This document shows, in pieces, positions 25,608 to 56,254 of a stretch of 64,000 bases of DNA. Each line of letters begins with the position of its first letter. Position 1 is the first letter of the stretch. Origin of the DNA: Adineta vaga (taxonomy: Eukaryota; Animalia; Rotifera). Where the stretch lies: positions 7,626,001 through 7,690,000 of the forward strand of contig CP075497.1 of the NCBI GenBank assembly GCA_021613535.1. The letters are read 5' to 3'. The notes under the pieces are model-generated. The model worked only from the letters and a program-made list of their open reading frames with translations, did not search any database and was not told the DNA's origin. A program made the position numbers and the translations under genes.

Positions 25608-26723
25608 ATGTTTTATTACATCTTATTCTTTGGTTTACTTATTCTATCGGTGCTTATCGCTGAACCTATTATTCCTAATCCATATGAACCTGTTCCACCA
25701 CCATCCTATAATTATTATGCATATCAACCATCCCAATACCAACAACAACAACAACAACAACAGGCACAAACACCTTCACCTTATTTAAATAAGCGTAATC
25801 CTAATAACGACCCTTATTCAAATTCTCAACAATCATATTCATCCATAGCAGCGACTTATGGAACTAGTGGAACGAAAGCATCATCATCCAAGCAATGTAA
25901 ATTACATATAAATTGTCCAAGTACGAAAATAAAAAAGATAATTTTATGCAATTATTTAAATATTCGTTATTTTGTCTAGATGCAAGAAACCGAGTGACAC
26001 TTGATATTCAAGGACCAGCAGGTATGTATGTTTTGATTCGAAAAGCTGGAAAGTCAAAAAACAATTTCTATTTATTTAGGCCCACCAGGTCCGCCAGGAA
26101 AACAGGGCATGCAAGGGCCCAGTGGTCCGCCAGGATTACCTGGTCCACCAGGTAAATTCTATTTCTTTTCGAATCAGACAATATTCAGATTTGTTTTTGA
26201 AGGTCGTGATGGTCATTCAAATATAAAATCTGCATTTTTTGTCGCATTAAACAATACATATTCTTTACAAACAGATTCATCTATAATCGTTTGGGATGAT
26301 ATTTTATTGAATAAAAATTATAATTTAAATAAAACAACAGGCATCTATTATGCTCCAATCGCTGGTCTCTATGAATTTAGTTTAACAGTTTGTGTACCAG
26401 CAAATAATATTGTATGTTTTCTAGTTTCTCTTCTTATCTTTATGTTTATTAGGATATGAATCATTTTAGGCATCTGTTTCTCTGTGTAAAAATACGGAAA
26501 ATATTGTACCATTGTGGGTCGAAGGATATTTAACAGCTGTGAAAAATCAAAAAGTACCCGTTTGGAATACGGCATCAACAACCGTGGTTTTATTTCTAAA
26601 TCGAGGTGATCGAATATATATTCGTGCCAATCACGTAATGATGGAGATTATAATTTTAAAACATCATTATATGGTTGGCGTTATACTACATTTGGTGGAT
26701 ATTTAATTCACGAAGATAATTAA
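25608..26723 (+). CDS. Secreted C1q/TNF-domain protein with short collagen repeat; apparent 1-nt frameshift at ~26627
   Basis: Signal peptide, P/Y/Q-rich segment, GPAGPPGPPGKQGMQGPSGPPGLPGPPGRDG, then SAFFVAL...TTGIYYAPIAGLYEFSLT...TASTTVVLFLNRGDRIYIR. The canonical YTTFGGYLI* end lies in a shifted frame. Confidence 0.88.
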
Positions 26724-44574: not shown

Positions 44575-47500
44575 ATGCATTTACTGAACAGATTTATCTC
44601 TATTCATCTAATCCTTCAAATATATTTTTGTCAATCTCAAATATATTCCAAAGATGTTCATACTGATGGTATGAATTCCAATACGACGAAATCATTAAAC
44701 GACACGTTAACTATCGGTAAGTTGTTGAATACATTACTATAAAGAGTTGCACTAGTGACTCTCATATATATATATGTATATATTCTTATTTGGAAGTTCA
44801 AGTAGATGATGGAGTGTCTGTTCTATTTGATAATCATGAAAATCTATTCATCTATTCATTGATCACATAGATTTTGTTTCCATTTAGACAATTTATCTAC
44901 AGAAGATTCAGTGAATATCAATCGTGAAATATCTCAAATTATTATTGAATATCCGTTGACAACAAATATACGTACGAAATATGTCACTGATGAAGAAGAT
45001 TACACTATAAATGAATCAATTACGTTTACAATACAAACTAATCAACAAAGATTACAATCGATAACCATTCTTGCTGGTTTTGCTTATGAAAATATTAATT
45101 ATGTATTTAATATCGAGGTTTGATTTTGCTTTGAAACAAACTCTTTTTTTTTTAGTTTCTTTTTTCTTTTTAGAATAATCGATTGAAAATTATCTTCTCA
45201 CAAGATAAGTTACCTGATCTAATATTAACATCAAGAAATGATTCACTATTAATCAACAATGGACAATGGCATCGAATAAATATTGAACGATCAAATCATA
45301 CGGTTTGATATTTTGTCTAATCGAAAAAACATCGATCAGTTATGCAGTTCTTTTTAGTTACGATTTATTCTTGATGGTATTGAACAATCTACTATAGAAT
45401 TATCTAATGAATGGCAAACAAAAACTAATATCTTCATTGGAAGTGAACTAACACCTGTTCCTAATAACGATTACAATGGTAGAATTGCTGACGTAAGTCT
45501 ATCATAATCCAGCATTATTTGAAGACAAAAAGGCTAATGCGTACACATATTCAAGATATATATGTAAACGAATTATAATTGATGTATATTGGTAGTTAAG
45601 TGGATTTTTGTACAAACTGTTGTTGAAGAAGAAGAAGAAGACAGACAGACAGATATTTTTAATACAAATTCATTTAGTGACAGACGATAGACTGATAGGA
45701 CTATTCTGGGATGTCTAAACAAGATTGAATATGATATAATTGATAGATCAAGGCAAAAGAAGATAGAATCTCCTCTAACAGAAGTACATTGCCTTGAAGA
45801 TACATAGACAGTCAATGTTGGTTCAAAGAATATTCGATATATACATGAAAATTTTCAATATCAATTGTTTTGTTTATCTTTTCATTGATGGACAATATTT
45901 ATTTACAATCAAAAGAAATGAATGTTTACATAGATTTATGTAGCTATAATCTTTTATCTTTCAAACATCTACATGTCATAATTATTGTTTTTCTTTATCT
46001 AATTAGATTATCGTTAGTAATACAGGTCAATTTTTGATTCTTCGTGAAGAAGATCATTCAGATGAACATTTCAAAGATTCATCAAAGAAAAATCAATCGA
46101 AATCATCTCATAGCATTGCTTTTTTACCCAATGATAATCATGAAATTATCCTTCCATTATCGACAAATTCTTCGTTTTATAGTTTATCATTTTCATTTCG
46201 AACATATTCAAATATCAGTACACTTTTACATTCCAAAAATCTTGATTTAAATCTTGATATTGACGGTTATTTAATATTAGTTATTCGAAATCAATCAACC
46301 CAAAGAATCTTTTCATCTGATACACCAAATCCAATTAATGATGGAAATCTTTATGTCATACACTTGGAATTAATCAATCAAACTCTTCAAGTATGGATCA
46401 ATATCAACAAAACAATCTCGATAGAACTTTCATCATCTTTAATCATTCCAAATTTTATCTTTGGTTGGCAAAATCAATTTCTTGGTTGTATAGAAAATGT
46501 GACTTATAATAATCAATTAATCACATTTAAACATATACCATTTAATCGTCAAAAATGTCCATCGAATAGTCTTCTTTTAAAATCTCTCTTCAATGTCTAT
46601 ATTGATCAAATCATATCGTTTGAAGAATATGATCGTCCAATTGTTATCATTCTTGATCAACCGAAAAAATTCTCAACATTTTCATTTTCGTTTTATACTC
46701 AAGAATCTAATGGAATTATTTGTTCATTAATTGATCAAAATTATGAAAACTTCCTTATCTTAAGTATTCGTCGTGAACATTTCATTTTAACTTATATTAA
46801 TCAATATCACGAACGAATCGAAATATCTATGAATAAAACAATTAATGATCAAATTGAACATGAATTTTCAATACGATTAATAAATAAAGATGAATTATTA
46901 TTTCAATTAGATGATAATCGAATAATGAAGACGATGTTTAATGTATTTTATATTCAAACGATTTATTTGGGAAAATTAGATGGTTTTGTTAAAGAAAAAT
47001 ATTATGATTTAGATCGAGAAGATTTTCTTGGTTGTCTAAAGGATATTCTATTAAATGAACAATCAGTAATCAAATTGGAACATATCTATCGATCAAATCG
47101 ATTGGGAGATACTTGCCGATTAACAAAACGTGGACGTAAGTTAATAAACAAAAAGGAACGTTCTTTTTTCTCTCTCTCTCTCGCTTTCGTCCCTAAACGA
47201 TTCTGTGTAAATATTCATTAGTTAGGTTTAAATTGTTCATCGGAGTATTCAATTTCTCGAATAAGTTCAATGGAGTGTAACGAGAAAATGAATTTGTTGA
47301 AGATTAATTAAGAAAATCTATGAAACGGAACAATAAATTTAATCTTAATTTCCTTCAATTTGTTTAGTTATCATAAATACATATATATATATATATATAT
47401 GTATACAAATGAGAAGAGAAAGTAAATTTGAAAATTGTTGATTTAACCTTGATAGATAAAATTGTGACATAATATAGTTGATATTCATTTTCACGGCTAT

Positions 47501-48887
47501 TTTCTACCTATCAAAATCGATCCATATCAGATTAATTTTGTTTGTTCTAGGCAAAAATTTCATATCATATATGTCAACAGAGATAAGTTTTTCTGTTCGC
47601 GATGATCATGATATAATTGAAGTAGAAATTCCCTTCAATGAAGAATTTTATCAATGTCAATTATCGATTAAAACTCGATCATTAAATGGTATTATTCTCT
47701 CAATGTATTCTGATGATGATTATACGTTTGTTTTCTATTTAAACAATGGCAAACTTGTTTGGAAATATCATTCATATGATTATACGATTTCGGAAGTTAT
47801 CTTTCAGGATCATCAAACGATTAATGATGGACAACAACATGATATTTTCATATCCAGACAGATATCAAAACTAACTTCATATAAGAATATGTATATAGAA
47901 ATAGATCAACGCGGCAGTCAAATATCATTGCCTTCATCTTCCTTATTATTTTTTGATGTTCTTACAATTGGTGGTTCACATCGAGAAATGTCGACAAGTA
48001 ATTTACTTGTTGGATGTTTTGCTAATCTGACATATAATCATCAATCATTATTACCTGAAGGAATTGTGAAATTTGATCGGTATGATTGTTTTTATGAACA
48101 AGATTCAATTTGTGACAAACAAATCCCTTGTGAACATGTTCAATCTTTTCAATTCTGTGGTCAAATCGATTGTTCGGTTGTATGTTCACCGTCGACACTT
48201 GATATTAATAAAAAAGGACTTGTTCGATATTTTTCTGATATTGAATCAGGTGAATATGAACAAATATATTTAACAATATTTACGACAGCAGGCAATTCAA
48301 CTTTATATGTCACACAGAATGGTTCGATTCAAGTATCAATTATCCTTCAAGTGAATTCATACGCGAATCGAAAAATTTCTTTTTTTTAATTAAATTTCCG
48401 TCAACATTTAGGATTATTATCCACGTTTAATCATTCAAAATGGTGGAATAATTTATACATATGATTTTCCTGGACGTGTACGAAATGATCAATGGCATTT
48501 ATTACAATGTCAAAAAACATTAAATACAGTATATTAATTTCGTTGTTGTCATCATTATCACTCATACAATCGTTTTTCTTTTCCTTGTTTTTTATAGATT
48601 GATTTAACATTTGATGAAGAAACTCGACATTATACAAATTTTACTGAACATTTTACTTTGTTTGCTGATAATTTAATTCATATATGCGGAGGAAATTTTA
48701 ATGGATATATTCAAGATGTAAGTGAAGACATAGAAGAAAAAGATTTTCATTGAATTTCTTTTTTAATAGATTATACTTACAGCGGATAATCATTACGAAA
48801 ATTTAATACAAAATTCGATTCATAATCCTGGATTAATCGATTATGATCGAAGTGTTACTTGGAATAATCGTGCCAACATACCTGAAT
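44575..48887 (+). CDS. Signal peptide plus five laminin-G domains; probable 5' part of a long isoform of the downstream EGF-TM-WD40 gene
   Basis: MHLLNRFISIHLILQIYFCQS; LamG hallmarks NNGQWHRINI, NDGNLYVIHL/FLGCIENV, NDQIEHEFSI/FLGCLKDI, NDGQQHDIFI/LVGCFANL, NDQWHLLQ/FNGYIQD. Last clear exon ends at a phase-1 donor (48888) with no TM or convincing stop exon. Confidence 0.8.
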
Positions 48888-49419
48888 GTAAGTTTTATCA
48901 ATATGTAAAACTAGACATTGATGACTAGAAGCCTTTCGTGTACTCGTTTTTTTTTCTTTTCGATCAACATCTACATGTGTATATATATATATGCATACAT
49001 ATTTGCTCAGGTGATCTAAGATCATTGCTGTTAATAAATTTTTTACTCGCGATTGAATGTACGCAAGTGTGGATATCGCCTTGAAGTTTGATTCAATCGA
49101 GGTGGCGACGACAATGTCAAGAGAGTTGCGACGACGCTTGATGGTTGTGAAGGAGAGAGAGAGAGAATATAGATGTAGATGAATGTGCATTTCGACAAAC
49201 TTGTCGTTCCTGTTGGCGCATATTCGTAACAAATTTTTTTTGCACATGCCCGCGCTTTTATTTTTTTTTCTTTGTCTTTTCTACATCAAATAATATTACT
49301 AACATCCCAATTCAAACAACACAAACGTGCGCTCATATATATACACGATCGTTCTTATGTGTAGTTCGTGTACGTTTTTTTAATGTTAATAAGAAGTTTT
49401 TTTTTCTGTTCCTTTAGTC

Positions 49420-50360
49420 TCTCCCTCTCTCTCTTCCCTTCATTCTTTTTCTTCTTTCCTTTTGTACGTGTGCTTGAGCACATACATACATGCACAGTTA
49501 ACATATATACAGAAAAGTAAAAGAAAAAAAGACTGTAGGAAGAGAACGACAATGAGGACAACGACTTCTGATTTCAGTATTACCAGTGTTAATAAAGAGA
49601 GAGAGAAAGAAATAGATAGAAAACAGTTGAGATGTTGTTAGTATAACATCTTCCTTTGCTTCGTTGATGTAGTTGTTCTTACTAATGCGATATATTACTA
49701 AGCATTCTACTTTTATAGCTTTCCTCTCTGTATTACTCATACATAGTTGATTTTTCTCGATATATTTCTCTCTTTCTCTTTTCTCTGCCATCAATAGCGT
49801 CGCCGCCATTTTGCGGTTTGCTGTTTGTTTGCGTCTTACGCCATTCCTCTCTTTTTCTCTGTCTCTGTCTCCGTCTCTGTCTCTTATTTCTTCTTGTGTT
49901 TCTATTACTCCTGCATCGAGAGAGAGGGAGAGAGGGAAAGAAAAGTGGGAGGAGGAGGAGAAAAGAGACGAGCTCAAAACGATATTCACCATCATCAATC
50001 GACACCGGCTATTGCATTATTCGAATTATTATTGGCAAAGGACTTTCTTTTCTTCAAGTCTTTTTCATCTCTATCTCTATCTTTGACTTTTATCGTTTGC
50101 TATCATCGTCGTTATTGTTTCATTCTTGATATATATATATATATATATATACAGTTACGATTCTCAACAACTACATATTACTCATCGACCTTGCTAAGAA
50201 AAGCAAAGAGTACAAAAAATATATATACATATATACATATATATATTCAACGTTAGTCGTCGTTTGTAATGATGTGATTCATCCATCCGTGCATTCATTG
50301 ATATAAGAGTTACACGCTTCTTTTTCATCGCTTTTTTTGTTATATTCATTATTACGTACA
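49420..50360 (+). promoter_or_regulatory. CT/GA- and TA-rich putative internal promoter with YY1/Pho-type motif (gccgccatttt at ~49802-49812)
   Basis: Perfect YY1 core among GAGA/CTCT tracts directly upstream of the signal-peptide exon at 50361. Function is inferred. Confidence 0.35.
50128..50151 (+). repeat. (TA)n microsatellite (similar tracts at ~47381-47400, ~52043-52061, ~62118-62136)
   Basis: Seen directly. Confidence 0.85.
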
Positions 50361-53300
50361 ATGAAATTCTTCGCTTCGTTACTATTGATTATCACTATAA
50401 CCGAAGCTGCACCTTCTCGATCGTCTCAATATGATGCACGACCAGGCGGCAACATGCCGTGTTACCTTGGCTGTTGTAAGTGTAACAATCTTTTTTCTAT
50501 GAATTTTTTTTTATTGTATATTTTTTCTATGAAGAAAACTTTTGGTTCATTGGACATATAAATATATATAATCTGTTTAAGGGACACCTTGTGAACGAAT
50601 CCAATGTCTTAATGGTGGTTATTGTATACAGCCCGCCTCACAAACAGGTTTAGCTCATTGTCAATGCCCTTCGAAGTTTACAGGATATCGCTGTGAACAA
50701 GCAGGTAAACAGTTCTCAACTTTTCTTTCTTGCTTTGATAATACACGCTGAGTATATGCCATTTGTCGTCAACGGGATAATGATGTCGGAGCCGGTGATA
50801 AGACCTTGAGAAATAAATAGATCAGCCTGTGTATTATGTGCGTATATATGTGTATGTGTGTGCGTGTGTGTGAGAAGGATTACATATTCTATCGTTGATA
50901 TTATCTCTTGCTCTTTCCCTTCTTCTGAGCATCAAGGTAACTATGCAAACAAAAGCATTATACGTGCAAGTAAAAAAGCTAATTTGAGTCAAGGTTCTTC
51001 TTTTCCTCTATCTTCTTCTTTTATCTTTCAATTAATTTTGTTGCTTTTCATTTTTCTTTTAGCCGTAATAGTTGATCCATGTTCAACTTATCAATGTAAT
51101 CATGGCACTTGTAACAAAGATCGTAACAGTCAACCATATTGTTCATGTTATGAAGGTTATGGTGGTTCACGTTGTGAAACTCAAATTGGTATGTTAAAAT
51201 ATAAACGAGCTTAGATGATTAATAGAAGTCAAGAAGTATTAGTCGAGTAGTCATTTTTCTTCGACTGATTCCAAGGTGATGCAACAATAACTAACGATCG
51301 AATTCCATTAGTGAATAGAATAAAGAATGAAGACGAGAAAATTAGGATACATTTTTGACTGGCACATGTATGGAGACATACATCAATCATTGTCTTTCGA
51401 GTAAAAGTTGTGGTCAGTCTTTGTCTTCTTATCATTACTTATGTATAAATGTCGCTGAGTTAAGACAAAAAGAGCGAAGAAGAAATTTCAAAAGAATAAC
51501 ATTTGGATAAAAAGATCGGTGACAGCATCTCGTTCATAATGATAGAATGCAAACAAAGACAGACAGATGTTTGGTCTTTGAATAATAGACTAATAATTAC
51601 ATATTGGATGCCTTCATAAGCTAAACGAGTTCATCAGTTGATTATAAGAAAGAGAAGGAAAATTGATCAATACTAAAATAGGATATGATTGTGCAAGGGC
51701 TTGCATAATTCTATCCAAATGTTTATCTCTCTATCGAGCGATCAACACTAGTTCGTATTTCTTTCTCTCTGCCTCGTTTCTTTTTATATACTACCCTGTC
51801 ATTGCACCTCCTCTTCAAAGATATAATTCAACATTATATTCAAGGTAATAAGTTGTCGTCGTCCATTTTTTACATCACATTGCGCCATGCTGTGTATGTA
51901 CGTACACGAAAAAGTAACATTATGCAAATTTCTCTTGATTGAACATGAACATGTGTATATGTATACCGTTAGAATCGGACAAAAAAAATCATACTCACGC
52001 ACACATGAGTTGCACGCACGCTCAGCTGGTCAAATATATACATATATATATATATATATATGCGAATATGTATACTCGTTCTTATTTTAATTGAACTAGT
52101 CCCTACTCTTCAATTTGCATAATGAAAAAAAGATTTCTATACATTGATATATTTATATGTAGAAGTAAAGAAAACAAAAGCTATAGATGATAATGATAAT
52201 GATATCTATTATAAAAGAATTAATTAAACAGAAAAGTTAATCGAATTTTGTATGTGAAAAAGACGAGTATAAGTTCTACTTAGATCCTTGTGCTCGAGTC
52301 AATTGTAACTACGGACGATGTGAATTGGTTCGTAGTACACCAGTTTGTCGATGTTATCAAGGTTATACAGGTCAAGAATGTCTCACAACAATTGGTGAGT
52401 TTCGTGTGTTTGTTTTTTAGAGTGTTTTCTTACGATGTAGTTGGATTTGCTTTGGTAGTTTATAGAAGACAAAATCGACAAACTGCTAGAATTCCTAGAA
52501 ATACTTTTTTCTTCTTCTATGTAATCATTTCGTTTATTTATCTCTGAAGATGCATGTGCTCGAGTATCATGCAACTATGGTTCATGTATCAATGAAGGTG
52601 CATCATACAGATGTGAATGCCAGCGAGGTTATGAAGGTTCAGCATGTGATCGACAAGTCGATCCATGCGCAAGTTTTGTTTGTTATAATGGAGGTATATG
52701 TCATGCACAAGCAAGTAATCAACCAGTGTGCCAATGTGCACATGGTTATCGAGGAGCGAATTGTTATGAAGCAGAGGGTAGGTGATCAGATTCACGAATG
52801 ATCAACGAAAAATATGTTCGCATGAATTCAACGAACAAACGCATGTTGATCTTTGCTCTCTCTCGCTCTCTTTCTCTCTGTCTTTCTCTGTTATGCCTTC
52901 GATCAATTAGACACCTGTCATAATATTACGTGTAATTATGAACAGTGTCTACTTAATCAGCATGATCAAACATTTGACCTGTGAATGTTTGCGTTACTAT
53001 GAAGATGTTCAATGTGTTTGGATGAATTCCGAATGTTTGATTGTTATGAATAGACAGTTGACATACGTGTTCTGTAAATAGAAAGAAGAAGAAAAGAATG
53101 GCACTATTCTAAGGCTTCACTAAAGCAGTAAAAATCAGCTTCTATTCAATCTAACAATTCCATGTACTTGAAAAAATAGTTTTTTTTTCATATCCGTCTT
53201 GCAACAAGAATAGAAATAATAATCCTAATACATATGAATGTATTATTTTTATTATTTAATTGAAGATCAAGTTTGTTTTGATTTTATTGTTCTTCACTGC

Positions 53301-56254
53301 ATGAACACATTGATTGGGCTTCTAGATAATATATTGAAAACAAAGTTAACCTCTGAAAACCCTTTAGTTTTTAATTTACAATTTCACTGTTTATTTTATT
53401 TCTTTTCTTCTTCTTCTATCATTAGTGGTTGATCCATGCTCGCGTTTCGAGTGTTATGGTGGTACTTGTACAAATGATCGAGGTGTAGCTCGCTGTGTCT
53501 GTCCAGCAGGACGTGCTGGCAACCGTTGTCAAGGTTAATTGAATTAATCCAATTTAGAACAATATCTGAATGATTATTGTTTTTATTTGAAAGATGATAT
53601 TTGTACACTGTATCCCTGTGCCCATAGTGGACAATGTATTCCAGAAGGTGCTAGTCGACGATGTATTTGTTCAACACCATACTATGGCGATGATTGTCGA
53701 GAAGGTATGAATGAAATTATTGAAATTGAAGACAATCATTGATTATATTATGAATTTGTTTAGTACATCGACCCAATCCATGCGATAATGTCTATTGTGG
53801 TTATGGACAATGTCTTGAAGGATATTGTGAATGTCATGGAGGTTATTCCGGCGCACGTTGTGATATTGCACGTAAGTTTCATCTTTAATTTCATTTCATA
53901 TAGGAAGTAAAATTCGATTTTAGCTGATCTATGTGCTGGTGTTAATTGTAATCAAGGCACATGTTATGAAGGTCGTTGTACATGTGCAGATGGTTATACA
54001 GGATCTTATTGCGAGACACAAAGTATGATTTGAAGAAAAAAAACCGAATATTCTTTGAAAACAAAAATAATACTCTAAATATTATGATATATAGTTACAA
54101 CACCAGCAACAATAGTTGCACAAACACCATCACGACCAGTCTTAACAGCTCAAACTGTTGGCCTTATTGGTGCAAGAAAAGGTCAATTGATCGATTACGG
54201 TCGACTATTAGGTGCTCGTGCTGGTCCCATTGGGTGGTTATTAGCCCCACTGGCAGCTCTGTTGTTAATTCCATTAGCACTCGCATTTGCAGGCGTAAAT
54301 GTACACACGGTGCCTGCTTACCAGGTGGAGGACGTTATGTTCCAGTTGCAGTCGGTACGATAGGTGAAATACGAATTCAAATGTTCTTTTTTAACTTGTC
54401 TTTTTCTCAGGTGGCGGAAATCGTATTACTCGTGATCTTCAATTAATCGATCAACGTGGTGATAATTTAGCAACGTCAGCAGGAGAAACAGAAACAACAA
54501 GAATTGAACAAACACGTGGTAAGTGATAGAGTGTAGATTGTATTAGAATAGAACATGTTTGAAAGTGATCCCATTACAGAAATCGTTAGAGAATACGGTG
54601 GTATGGAAGCCGTGGGTGGTGTTGTTACTAACTATCCAACCATATCATCACGTTATGGTGACTTTGCGCGAGAGAATCAGCAGCAGCAACAACAACAACA
54701 ACAACAAACATCATCAGGCTTCTCACAACGTAGGAATACGCATGAAATTGATCGTTACTTTTTTCTTGTTAATCCTATGCATGTTCTATTCGATACTTGT
54801 AAAATCTTATCAATCAAATTCTAATTTCTTTTTTCTAGAACATATCATCGAAACCGATTATCATCCACCACCGGTTGCAGATTTTGGTTATGGTCGCGGT
54901 GGTCTCACTGAAGGATATCGAGATACATTTGAATCATGGGAGTCAAATGGTGCTACTGGTGGTTATTCAATGAATGCAATGTTTGCTGATGGCGGCTTAC
55001 AAACTGATTATGAAATGAGTAATATTAATTCAGTTAGTATGACACCAAATGGAAAATATGCGATTGTTGGACAAAGTCAAGGACCACCACAAATATGGGA
55101 CGCTATCGTAAGAAAAAAAATAATATTGATATTCTATGATAGATAAAGATACAAATATTCGATTTTAGAATGGACAATTAGTTTCAAGTATGCAAGGAAC
55201 AAGTACAAATTGTAGTAAAGTAGGATTAGCATGCAGTGGTACACTTCTGGTCGGTTTAGCAAGCGATGGCATCGATTCACAAACAAGCATACTTCAAGTA
55301 AGTTGCTATAATGATTGCTTCATACAAATAATATTTTCTCGTATCTATAGATCTGGGATGTAAACACTGGAAAACCAGTCCAATTAACTCATCAAATTAA
55401 ATGCGCGACATTCACCTTAAGTAATAATTCAAGTAATCTTATTATGGCTGGTAATCAAAAATATGGACGTGGTATATCTGTTGGTATACTTGATTTAAAT
55501 AATTCCGAATTAACAAAAGAAATTAAATCAGATACAAATCAATCTTATGGTGGTACACCATCATTTGTTTTATTAACTTCAGATGAGCGATATGCCGTTG
55601 TTGCTTGTCCAAATGGATCAGCAACGAATTATGTTGTTTTTGATTTAACAACTCCTCATGAATTAGTTCAACCAGCAACAATTACTTTCGATTGTGAACC
55701 AAAATGTTCACTTGTTTTAAATAATGATCAAATGTTAACTGGCACTCGAAATGGACAAGTTATTGTTTGGGATATTCCATCATGTCAACGTATACAAACA
55801 TTAACAGATAATGGTCAAAATGCACATCGAGATCGAATAACAGACTTAAAAATTGCACCTGATCGTTCATGTTTTGTAACGACAAGTGCCGATGGAACAG
55901 GCAAAGTTTGGGATACAAATTCCAAAGAATTAATTTCAAGATTAATTGGACATAAACGAGAAGTAAGAAATATTTTCAATTCATATGTCTATTTAGTTTT
56001 TCAAACAAATCATTTGACTATTTTAGATAACGTGTGCATGTGTTTCAACAAATCAATTAGTTGCAACTGGTTCCAAAGATCAAAATATATGTTTATGGCG
56101 TATGCAAACTGGTCAAACAGCATCAACAATGCCTGTTGGTATGGCACCAATTGATATTCATATGGCTGCGCATAATCGAACAATTGTTGCGATTGGCGAT
56201 AAAGATGGTGAAAGACAATTATTAATGCTACGTGTCGTCTCTATACAACGATAA
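50361..56254 (+). CDS. Type I membrane protein: signal peptide, 9 EGF repeats, TM, cytoplasmic linker, WD40 repeats; apparent 1-nt frameshift at ~54292
   Basis: MKFFASLLLIITITEA; EGF exons 50582-54021; TM IGWLLAPLAALLLIPLALAFA; phase-compatible exons continue into WD40 repeats (QIWDAINGQLV, IWDVNTGK, TGTRNGQVIVWD, AHRDRITDL..TTSADGTGKVWD, GHKREITC..TGSKDQNICLWR). Confidence 0.82.
52911..53020 (+). pseudogene. Decayed EGF pseudo-exon inside an intron
   Basis: After an acceptor ttag: DTCHNITCNYEQCLLNQHDQTF, frame break, TCECLRYYEDVQC. All 6 Cys are kept but the conserved Gly residues are lost and there is no clear donor. Confidence 0.6.

Follow-up and report, generated by a model that had tools for sequence, protein, structure and literature searches.

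Domain organization of the locus

The 64,000-nt window analyzed here (C6:7626001-7690000 of the six-contig, 100.8-Mb genome of the rotifer Adineta vaga) is AT-rich, with ~30% G+C and short GT..AG introns, and contains, at ~44.5 to 56.25 kb, the exons of a predicted membrane receptor in which laminin-G (LamG) domains precede epidermal growth factor (EGF)-like repeats, a transmembrane (TM) helix, a cytoplasmic linker and a WD40 propeller. The comparisons presented below make it likely that these exons form one gene of the PHRED-1 type, with two nested first exons that give rise to a long and a short form. The nearest protein relatives of the window are found first in other bdelloid rotifers (Adineta steineri, Rotaria and Didymodactylos) and next in acanthocephalans, and the same genome carries a diverged second copy (ohnologue) on the minus strand of contig C3 (8611000-8630500). 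We derived the exon positions of the LamG block from reading frames, splice sites and collinearity with orthologues, and the window exons were submitted one by one to domain and homology searches; in one alignment, both sides of the junction were set together with an X at the join. All window features described below lie on the plus strand, and a slash marks an exon boundary.

The first exon of the long form (44575 to 44716) starts with an ATG at 44575, encodes a hydrophobic, signal-like N terminus (MHLLNRFISIHLILQIYFCQ) and ends in phase 1 with ATC G/gtaagt. It is homologous to the N terminus of the A. steineri orthologue P0067, which begins with its counterpart. The hydrophobic character of the N terminus from 44575 (FISIHLILQIYF), as that of P0067, P0071 and P0019, was recognized by a hydropathy scan only and not by a dedicated signal-peptide predictor. 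There follows a block of eight exons (44888 to 48887) that encodes five LamG domains and closes with the phase-1 donor T/gtaagt: 44888-45117, 45174-45302, 45358-45492, 46007-47135, 47551-48350, 48412-48528, 48598-48717 and 48770-48887. Matches to the Pfam Laminin_G_2 domain were obtained in 46007-47134 and 47553-48350. In P0067 (1,895 aa), each of the five LamG domains scores above the Pfam cut-off, and the block is collinear with P0067, with the Didymodactylos carnosus model P0026 and with the C3 ohnologue.

A long intron separates the LamG block from the first EGF exon. Its nonconserved start (48888 to 49169) contains a candidate stop exon (49011-49084) and the stop codon (48926-48928) at which read-through of the last LamG exon would end. 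The conserved and transcribed region from 49170 to 50360 leads into the coding part of the short-form first exon (50361 to 50475), which begins with an ATG at 50361, encodes MKFFASLLLIITITEAAPSRSSQYDARPGGNMPCYLGC plus a T and ends with the phase-1 donor gtaagt. An internal AG in this exon (50405 to 50406) might also receive the long form in phase 1; the exon would then start at 50407 and T/CT would code for Ser, the solution adopted in some public gene models. The first exon that both forms would share encodes EGF 1 (50582 to 50704) and is bounded by the phase-1 acceptor aag/GG and the phase-1 donor G/gtaaac.

The remaining shared part (51063 to 56254) encodes further EGF exons, the TM helix, the cytoplasmic linker and the WD40 propeller, and is collinear with residues 1001-1895 of P0067. 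The further EGF exons lie at 51063-51190, ~52270-52400, 52540-52782 and 53400-54020; in total, nine to ten EGF-like exons, one of them apparently frameshifted, occur between 50582 and 54020. A hydropathy scan revealed a single membrane helix (IGWLLAPLAALLLIPLALAFAG) in 54088-54360 and likewise one helix in each orthologue, and the propeller (55169-56251) is followed by the stop codon at 56252-56254. Pfam matches were obtained to EGF in 52525-52782 and to WD40 in 55351-55995.

A LamG-less form begins with its own first exon

The clearest result concerns the short form. Three sequencing runs of one study (X1-X3), labeled only "RNA?", provided assembled contigs that were aligned with the window; we take these runs as RNA because their contigs are spliced, unlike those of a further run (X5), which carry introns, so that this run behaves as DNA. 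Each of the three runs yielded one contig (depth 13-17) that starts at 49988, 49991 or 50022, runs unbroken through the leader and the ATG exon to 50475, and continues with 50582-50704 and from 51063 onward. The joints 50475>50582 and 50704>51063 are thus present in all three runs, and the leader of the short-form mRNA comprises at least 370 nt lying inside the intron 48888-50581. An additional small contig covers 49627-49910. Other bdelloids agree with this: short spliced contigs in three data sets (Logan SRR12193041, JGI 3300056998 and ENA ERZ22157241) carry open frames (P0163, P0164 and P0165) that begin with the same signal-peptide exon (MKFF...CYLGCW/TPCER...) and continue into EGF 1, EGF 2 and beyond. 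The spliced bdelloid contigs L013, L014 and L015 begin in the homologous leader and have in-frame stops ahead of the ATG; for L013, the alignment to the window extends from the very first base through 49967-50476, 50582-50704 and 51088-51188. Hence, a short form with its own first exon and signal peptide and without LamG domains exists, as the sequence-only reading of this DNA had anticipated when it proposed a product consisting of a signal peptide, EGF repeats, TM helix and WD40 tail.

The region upstream of the short-form ATG is itself conserved. Window positions 49170/49266-50360 align with the C3 ohnologue over ~1.4 kb at 67% overall, and the synonymous divergence (dS) of the coding exons is 0.5-0.8; blocks at ~49340-49400, 49625-49700, 49810-49850 and 49975-50040 are nearly identical between the ohnologues. 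Loose contig ends at 49663 and 49700 match the leader of the ohnologue, so that both copies of the region are transcribed. Comparison of the ohnologues revealed no conserved open frame on either strand of the leader that would point to a minus-strand gene or a hidden coding region, and a search of Rfam for known RNAs recovered only two subthreshold matches to plant microRNAs in low-complexity sequence. A small upstream open frame (ATGATGTGA) occurs at 50270. We interpret the region 49170-50360 as leader plus promoter for the short form, and its ~1 kb of conserved sequence could hold promoter elements or translational control. On the basis of these observations, short-form transcription starts inside the 1.7-kb intron that follows the LamG block, no further downstream than 49988 and perhaps even before 49627; the ATG and signal peptide come from exon 50361-50475, and splicing of 50475 to 50582 gives a LamG-less receptor. 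Assembled contigs cannot show transcript starts, ends or rare forms, and hence neither transcription start is mapped; the internal 5' end presumably reflects a genuine promoter and not another mode of 5'-end formation.

The LamG block ends with a conserved phase-1 donor

The last LamG exon ends with CCT GAA T/gtaagt (the T at 48887), and the short-form exon ends with GGC TGT T/gtaagt (the T at 50475). The first EGF exon opens, after tttaag, with GG ACA CCT TGT from 50582, such that joining it to either donor yields TGG. The bases thus read exactly as had been described from the sequence: both donors are in phase 1, end in T and fit the phase-1 acceptor at 50582. The weight that had been given to the resulting common Trp codon did not survive comparison. 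The base carried at the LamG-end donor is C in 10 of 12 bdelloid loci (giving Arg) and G in one, with T found only in the window, and we therefore reject the shared Trp codon as a meaningful signal; it is a coincidence of the window copy. The agreement in phase is also weak evidence, because a match is expected by chance at about one in three per site and all module boundaries checked in this gene are in phase 1.

More telling is the persistence of the donor. At the end of the LamG block it is in phase 1 in 12/12 bdelloid loci (GTAAG in 10, GTAGG in one and GTAAC in one), the intron sequence beside it does not align, and the read-through tails past it differ between loci both in sequence and in length (3 to 38 codons). 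Since the donor is conserved next to nonaligning intron sequence, its retention exceeds chance. In the C3 ohnologue, the last LamG exon ends with CAA C/gtaagt, again in phase 1 and predicted to give Arg, and the first ~300-400 nt of the long intron have no alignment to that copy. A survey of every phase-1 AG site with a pyrimidine tract, carried out in both ohnologues for the region 48888-50360, turned up no conserved acceptor and no conserved frame that such an acceptor would open.

The order of the parts is also kept. The C3 ohnologue has, on one strand as in the window, LamG exons, an ATG exon (MKILISLLSIIILIEAAPP...CYLGC, T/gtaagt), EGF 1, TM helix and WD40. Didymodactylos carnosus represents a deep bdelloid branch, and its model P0026 (2,676 aa) has the LamG-EGF-TM-WD40 architecture collinear with the window. 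At its locus (L011), the last LamG exon ends in phase 1 with GAA G/gtaacg, and ~3.7 kb of intron extend from the LamG end to EGF 1 (26431); within this intron lies an ATG exon (25808-25910) encoding MFIGILIVAILISFISNVYSQAVYDARSGGCYYC plus C/gtaagt, which has a YDARxGG...C..C motif in common with the window start exon. A metagenome scan with the LamG-end alignment retrieved 12 genomic loci of other bdelloids, all with introns, and of use only for donor conservation. Nine of them hold the last LamG exon, which ends with IP(E/Q) plus C followed by GTAAG (8/9) or GTAGG (1/9); in the four with enough downstream DNA (L018, L020, L025 and L026), the ATG exon and EGF 1 follow 1.1-1.7 kb on. Across the loci that are long enough (both ohnologues, Didymodactylos and these four), the order LamG block, start exon, EGF 1 is kept in 7/7, and in each the start exon opens with an ATG and a hydrophobic stretch, carries a YDAR/QYEG...C..C motif and ends at a GTAAGT donor in phase 1. 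Both first exons thus have counterparts outside this copy, the short-form exon across these loci and the exon at 44575 in the N terminus of P0067 and in a nested exon of the C3 copy (see below).

The ratio of nonsynonymous to synonymous divergence (dN/dS) relative to the ohnologue is 0.24-0.59 in the LamG exons, 0.12-0.23 in the EGF exons and 0.08-0.16 in the cytoplasmic linker and WD40 region, values that place the LamG exons under purifying selection. The LamG exons (46007-48887) also evolve much faster than the remaining gene (e.g., 55169-56251).

Evidence for a probable long form and the choice of its acceptor

Proteins that combine the LamG and EGF-TM-WD40 parts are found well beyond the window. 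The query part of P0026 spanning its last two LamG domains through WD40 (residues 1278-2676) is covered to 100% by fused gene models in four species of Rotaria, in A. steineri and in D. carnosus, and to 99% by a model in the acanthocephalan Neoechinorhynchus agilis. In another acanthocephalan, Pomphorhynchus laevis, several annotated isoforms have a signal peptide, five LamG domains, EGF repeats, a TM helix and a tail matching the cytoplasmic exon of the window. A relative's 7,099-nt contig (L012) carries, after a 615-nt leader, an uninterrupted frame of 2,061 aa (P0071) that opens with a signal-like start and goes on to LamG, EGF, a single TM helix and WD40. Orthologous genes have 20 or more introns, and this intronless contig is therefore most simply read as a transcript. 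Together with the kept donor, the kept order and the lack of a conserved stop exon, these comparisons make it quite probable that a long form exists in A. vaga too, and the splicing of 48887 to the shared exons is suggested by the same conservation and by the relatives. Transcription of this form would begin upstream of 44575 and run through the LamG exons to the phase-1 donor at 48887. The comparative part of the earlier proposal, a long isoform with signal peptide, five LamG domains, EGF repeats, TM helix and WD40, is thereby supported; the RNA of this animal shows the LamG exons to be transcribed and spliced, with the expected joints 48350>48412 and 48528>48598, and has no joint leaving 48887.

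As to the acceptor, the LamG end would most likely join 50582 directly, skipping the internal first exon, as had been proposed from the sequence. The alternative that survives best also has two starts, but the internal AG would admit the long form into the short-form first exon, from 50407 on, with the joint 50475>50582 used next, so that the peptide APSRSSQYDARPGGNMPCYLGCW would be present in both forms. This is the path taken by the model of the closest orthologue (P0067) and by the Rotaria models P0053, P0054, P0058, P0060 and P0069, and the window, the ohnologue, L025 and L026 all have the AG in a fitting phase. No AG occurs at this position in L018, L020 and Didymodactylos; the direct path from the LamG end to EGF 1, in contrast, is present in every locus read and is the one followed in P0026, P0051, P0052, P0059, P0065 and P0066. 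Because the internal AG is not conserved and the direct path is available everywhere, 48887>50582 is favored, though not settled, and entry at 50407 appears rather unlikely. More generally, the public models P0051-P0069 conflict at the LamG/EGF junction, and model P0064 leaves out the last LamG exon.

One gene or two

Several observations weigh against joining the LamG block to the rest of the gene. No contig of X1-X3 has a joint leaving 48887, and since the stretch 48707-49626 is without any cover, such a joint is neither seen nor excluded; the junction check that had been suggested for this DNA thus recovered 50475>50582 but not 48887>50582. The LamG exons are represented in the RNA only by short contigs of depth 2-3, and the difference from the depth of 13-17 in the shared exons is a poor measure of expression. 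Searches of proteins and contigs for RNA-derived bdelloid sequence running from LamG to EGF gave only genomic read-through frames and short-form transcripts. The fused bdelloid models may share similar prediction pipelines and, as noted, disagree on the acceptor. Finally, the intron offers possible ends for a LamG transcript, in the form of the read-through stop at 48926 and an AATAAA at 49034-49039.

On a rival reading there would be two neighboring genes, namely, one for a secreted LamG-only protein, ending at the stop at 48926 or in the exon 49011-49084 with polyadenylation before 49.3 kb, and an independent one for a receptor with signal peptide, EGF repeats, TM helix and WD40; the fused models of other bdelloids would then be artefacts, and the split would have followed the divergence of bdelloids and acanthocephalans. 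In line with this, a separate ATG, signal peptide and leader belong to the short form, the rate of evolution of the LamG exons is three to five times that of the remainder, and the Didymodactylos model P0049 ends the LamG part separately. Against it stand the phase-1 donor, which is kept in all 12 loci while coding tails and stop positions are not, the retention of neighborhood and strand in every locus, and the fused frame both in a relative's transcript contig (P0071) and in planarian PHRED-1. The candidate exon 49011-49084 is likewise absent from the ohnologue. We consider two separate genes improbable, and slightly more so than entry at 50407.

We rejected the candidate exon 49011-49084 as a conserved feature: tblastn found no match to it in the ohnologue, the intron around it cannot be aligned and it has no RNA cover, although it may serve as a minor end. 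The possibility raised earlier, that LamG transcripts end in this exon, was accordingly not borne out by conservation or by RNA, where coverage of the LamG part is sparse. The companion observation that the LamG block lacks a convincing stop exon holds, as the intron contains no conserved terminal exon. A LamG-only product may nevertheless be made, in view of the read-through stop and the AATAAA.

That a single promoter upstream of 44575 serves both forms, with the 5' end of the short mRNA arising by processing, e.g., by the spliced-leader trans-splicing that bdelloids use, is compatible with contigs that cannot show true starts but is highly improbable, given that L013 and the X1-X3 contigs align from their first base with no foreign leader, that the ohnologues have ~1 kb of conserved sequence ahead of the ATG and that the shared exons are several-fold deeper in the contigs than the LamG exons (a weak measure).

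Relationship to PHRED-1 and to neurexins

The architecture encoded in the window is that of a known family. PHRED-1 of the planarian Schmidtea mediterranea is a predicted type I membrane protein of 2,536 aa. Its single 8-kb transcript, verified at the 5' end by RACE, codes for a signal sequence, six LamG domains, nine EGF repeats, a lone membrane helix and WD40 repeats on the intracellular side (Adler and Sanchez Alvarado 2017, bioRxiv 10.1101/131789). Its authors reported this domain combination only in lophotrochozoans and regard the protein as a divergent homologue of neurexin-1; their paper reports no isoforms and no internal start exon (bioRxiv 10.1101/131789). The rotifer gene has the signal-like N terminus, several LamG domains, about nine EGF repeats and a single helix followed by WD40, and the rotifer and acanthocephalan proteins carry the same parts in one frame. 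The window copy has five LamG domains as opposed to six in PHRED-1, and its N-terminal block is shorter than that of the C3 ohnologue or of Didymodactylos. We therefore classify the gene as of PHRED-1 type, by likeness of domain architecture rather than by sequence-level orthology. Outside rotifers and acanthocephalans, the P0026 query part matched only generic EGF/LamG or WD40 proteins, and the cytoplasmic part, when used to query a feature atlas, recovered nothing beyond generic WD40 clusters. Our literature search found no paper on this gene in rotifers, and the nested start exon is new for the PHRED-1 family, not having been reported for it before.

The earlier comparison of this locus with neurexins holds in its logic and in the caveat that domain order and tail differ, with the qualification that the family had already been described as the PHRED-1 type. 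In neurexins, the alpha and beta forms arise through an internal promoter with an alternative signal peptide and share the stalk, helix and tail (PMC10084454). As in the alpha/beta(/gamma) forms of NRXN1-3, the short form in the window begins within an intron of the probable long form, and its exon, which encodes an own signal peptide and some 20 residues specific to it, is joined to the first shared exon. The two forms would have the EGF stalk, helix and cytoplasmic tail in common and differ in the presence of the outer LamG part. The family features proper of neurexins, the (LamG-EGF-LamG)x3 ectodomain and the short PDZ-binding tail, are lacking from the window gene. Here, five LamG domains are followed by about nine EGF repeats, and a WD40 propeller forms the tail; the position of the nested start, behind the last LamG domain rather than before it, leaves the short form with no LamG domain, unlike beta-neurexin, which keeps the last one. 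Given this position, the likeness of the two dual-start arrangements is probably convergent.

A further parallel is offered by CRB1, a vertebrate Crumbs homologue, where a gene for a single-pass receptor with EGF and LamG domains uses an internal promoter and a distinct 5' exon to produce an N-terminally shortened isoform (CRB1-B, as opposed to CRB1-A) that is the major form in some cells. CRB1 differs in family membership and in its short cytoplasmic tail, and a separate 3' exon further distinguishes CRB1-B.

Nested start exons in the C3 ohnologue

The C3 ohnologue extends this pattern by another level. It has an extra N-terminal LamG block (residues 1-472 of P0064; region G000:C3:8627440-8630500, minus strand) that ends in phase 1 with CAA T/gtaagt and has no detectable counterpart in the window. 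Between this block and the next LamG exon lies an ATG/signal-peptide exon (~C3:8627628) encoding MSFTKQFPFLVILFSLQIYPCQQQ and ending in phase 1 with ACT G/gtaaga, which is homologous to the window first exon at 44575; the C3 copy thus has three nested start exons. The same exon is hence nested in one copy and outermost in the other, a correspondence that supports the view that such nested ATG exons function as first exons. A broader and more tentative proposal, to which we give somewhat less than even chances, is that the PHRED-1-type gene of bdelloids has a nested set of signal-peptide first exons, three in the C3 ohnologue and two in the window copy, which would have lost, or never had, the outermost LamG block; they would produce ectodomains of graded length with the LamG-less one most abundant, in a design kept since the deepest bdelloid splits and independent of the neurexin alpha/beta/gamma promoters. 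The difference between the ohnologues in the outermost block points to a possible division of labor after genome duplication.

Receptors of the PHRED-1 type are confined to spiralians, and the single member studied so far acts in muscle patterning in planarians. A conserved internal start that drops all LamG domains and keeps the EGF stalk and WD40 tail would provide a natural long/short pair for probing the role of the LamG domains, much as the alpha/beta-neurexins do for synaptic adhesion. There are also consequences for annotation: the public bdelloid models follow two conflicting routes in fusing the parts, some of them taking in part of the short-form first exon, and none represents the short form, which dominates the RNA contigs.

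Variation among the EGF exons and WD40-tailed paralogues

Contigs of run X3 (depth ~3) occur at 51466-51998, inside the 1.1-kb intron between EGF 2 and EGF 3, within which the stretches 51506-51715 (69%) and 51917-51960 (91%) are conserved in the ohnologue; these contigs could stem from a retained intron, from an alternative exon or from a nested RNA. L013 (positions 633-760) runs from EGF 2 to the exon at 52549 and skips the EGF 3 exon (window 52283-52387), whereas L014 and L015 include it, so that alternative splicing of single EGF repeats is possible. The apparently frameshifted EGF exon of the window (~52908-53030) has one extra base near 52970 and two near its end. Its counterparts in the C3 ohnologue and in L013 are intact, and the A. 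steineri model P0067 has no such exon; in the window it is possibly a dead exon that gets skipped.

Paralogues of the WD40 tail (39-47% identity) are encoded elsewhere in the genome at G000:C6:6678548-6678829 and G000:C3:9471414-9471902. The public databases also contain long proteins (P0075, P0077, P0078, P0082, P0087 and P0088) with LamG and WD40 but without EGF matches, some of them with an activin-receptor-type domain, and the family of WD40-tailed receptors may thus be wider than the gene in the window.

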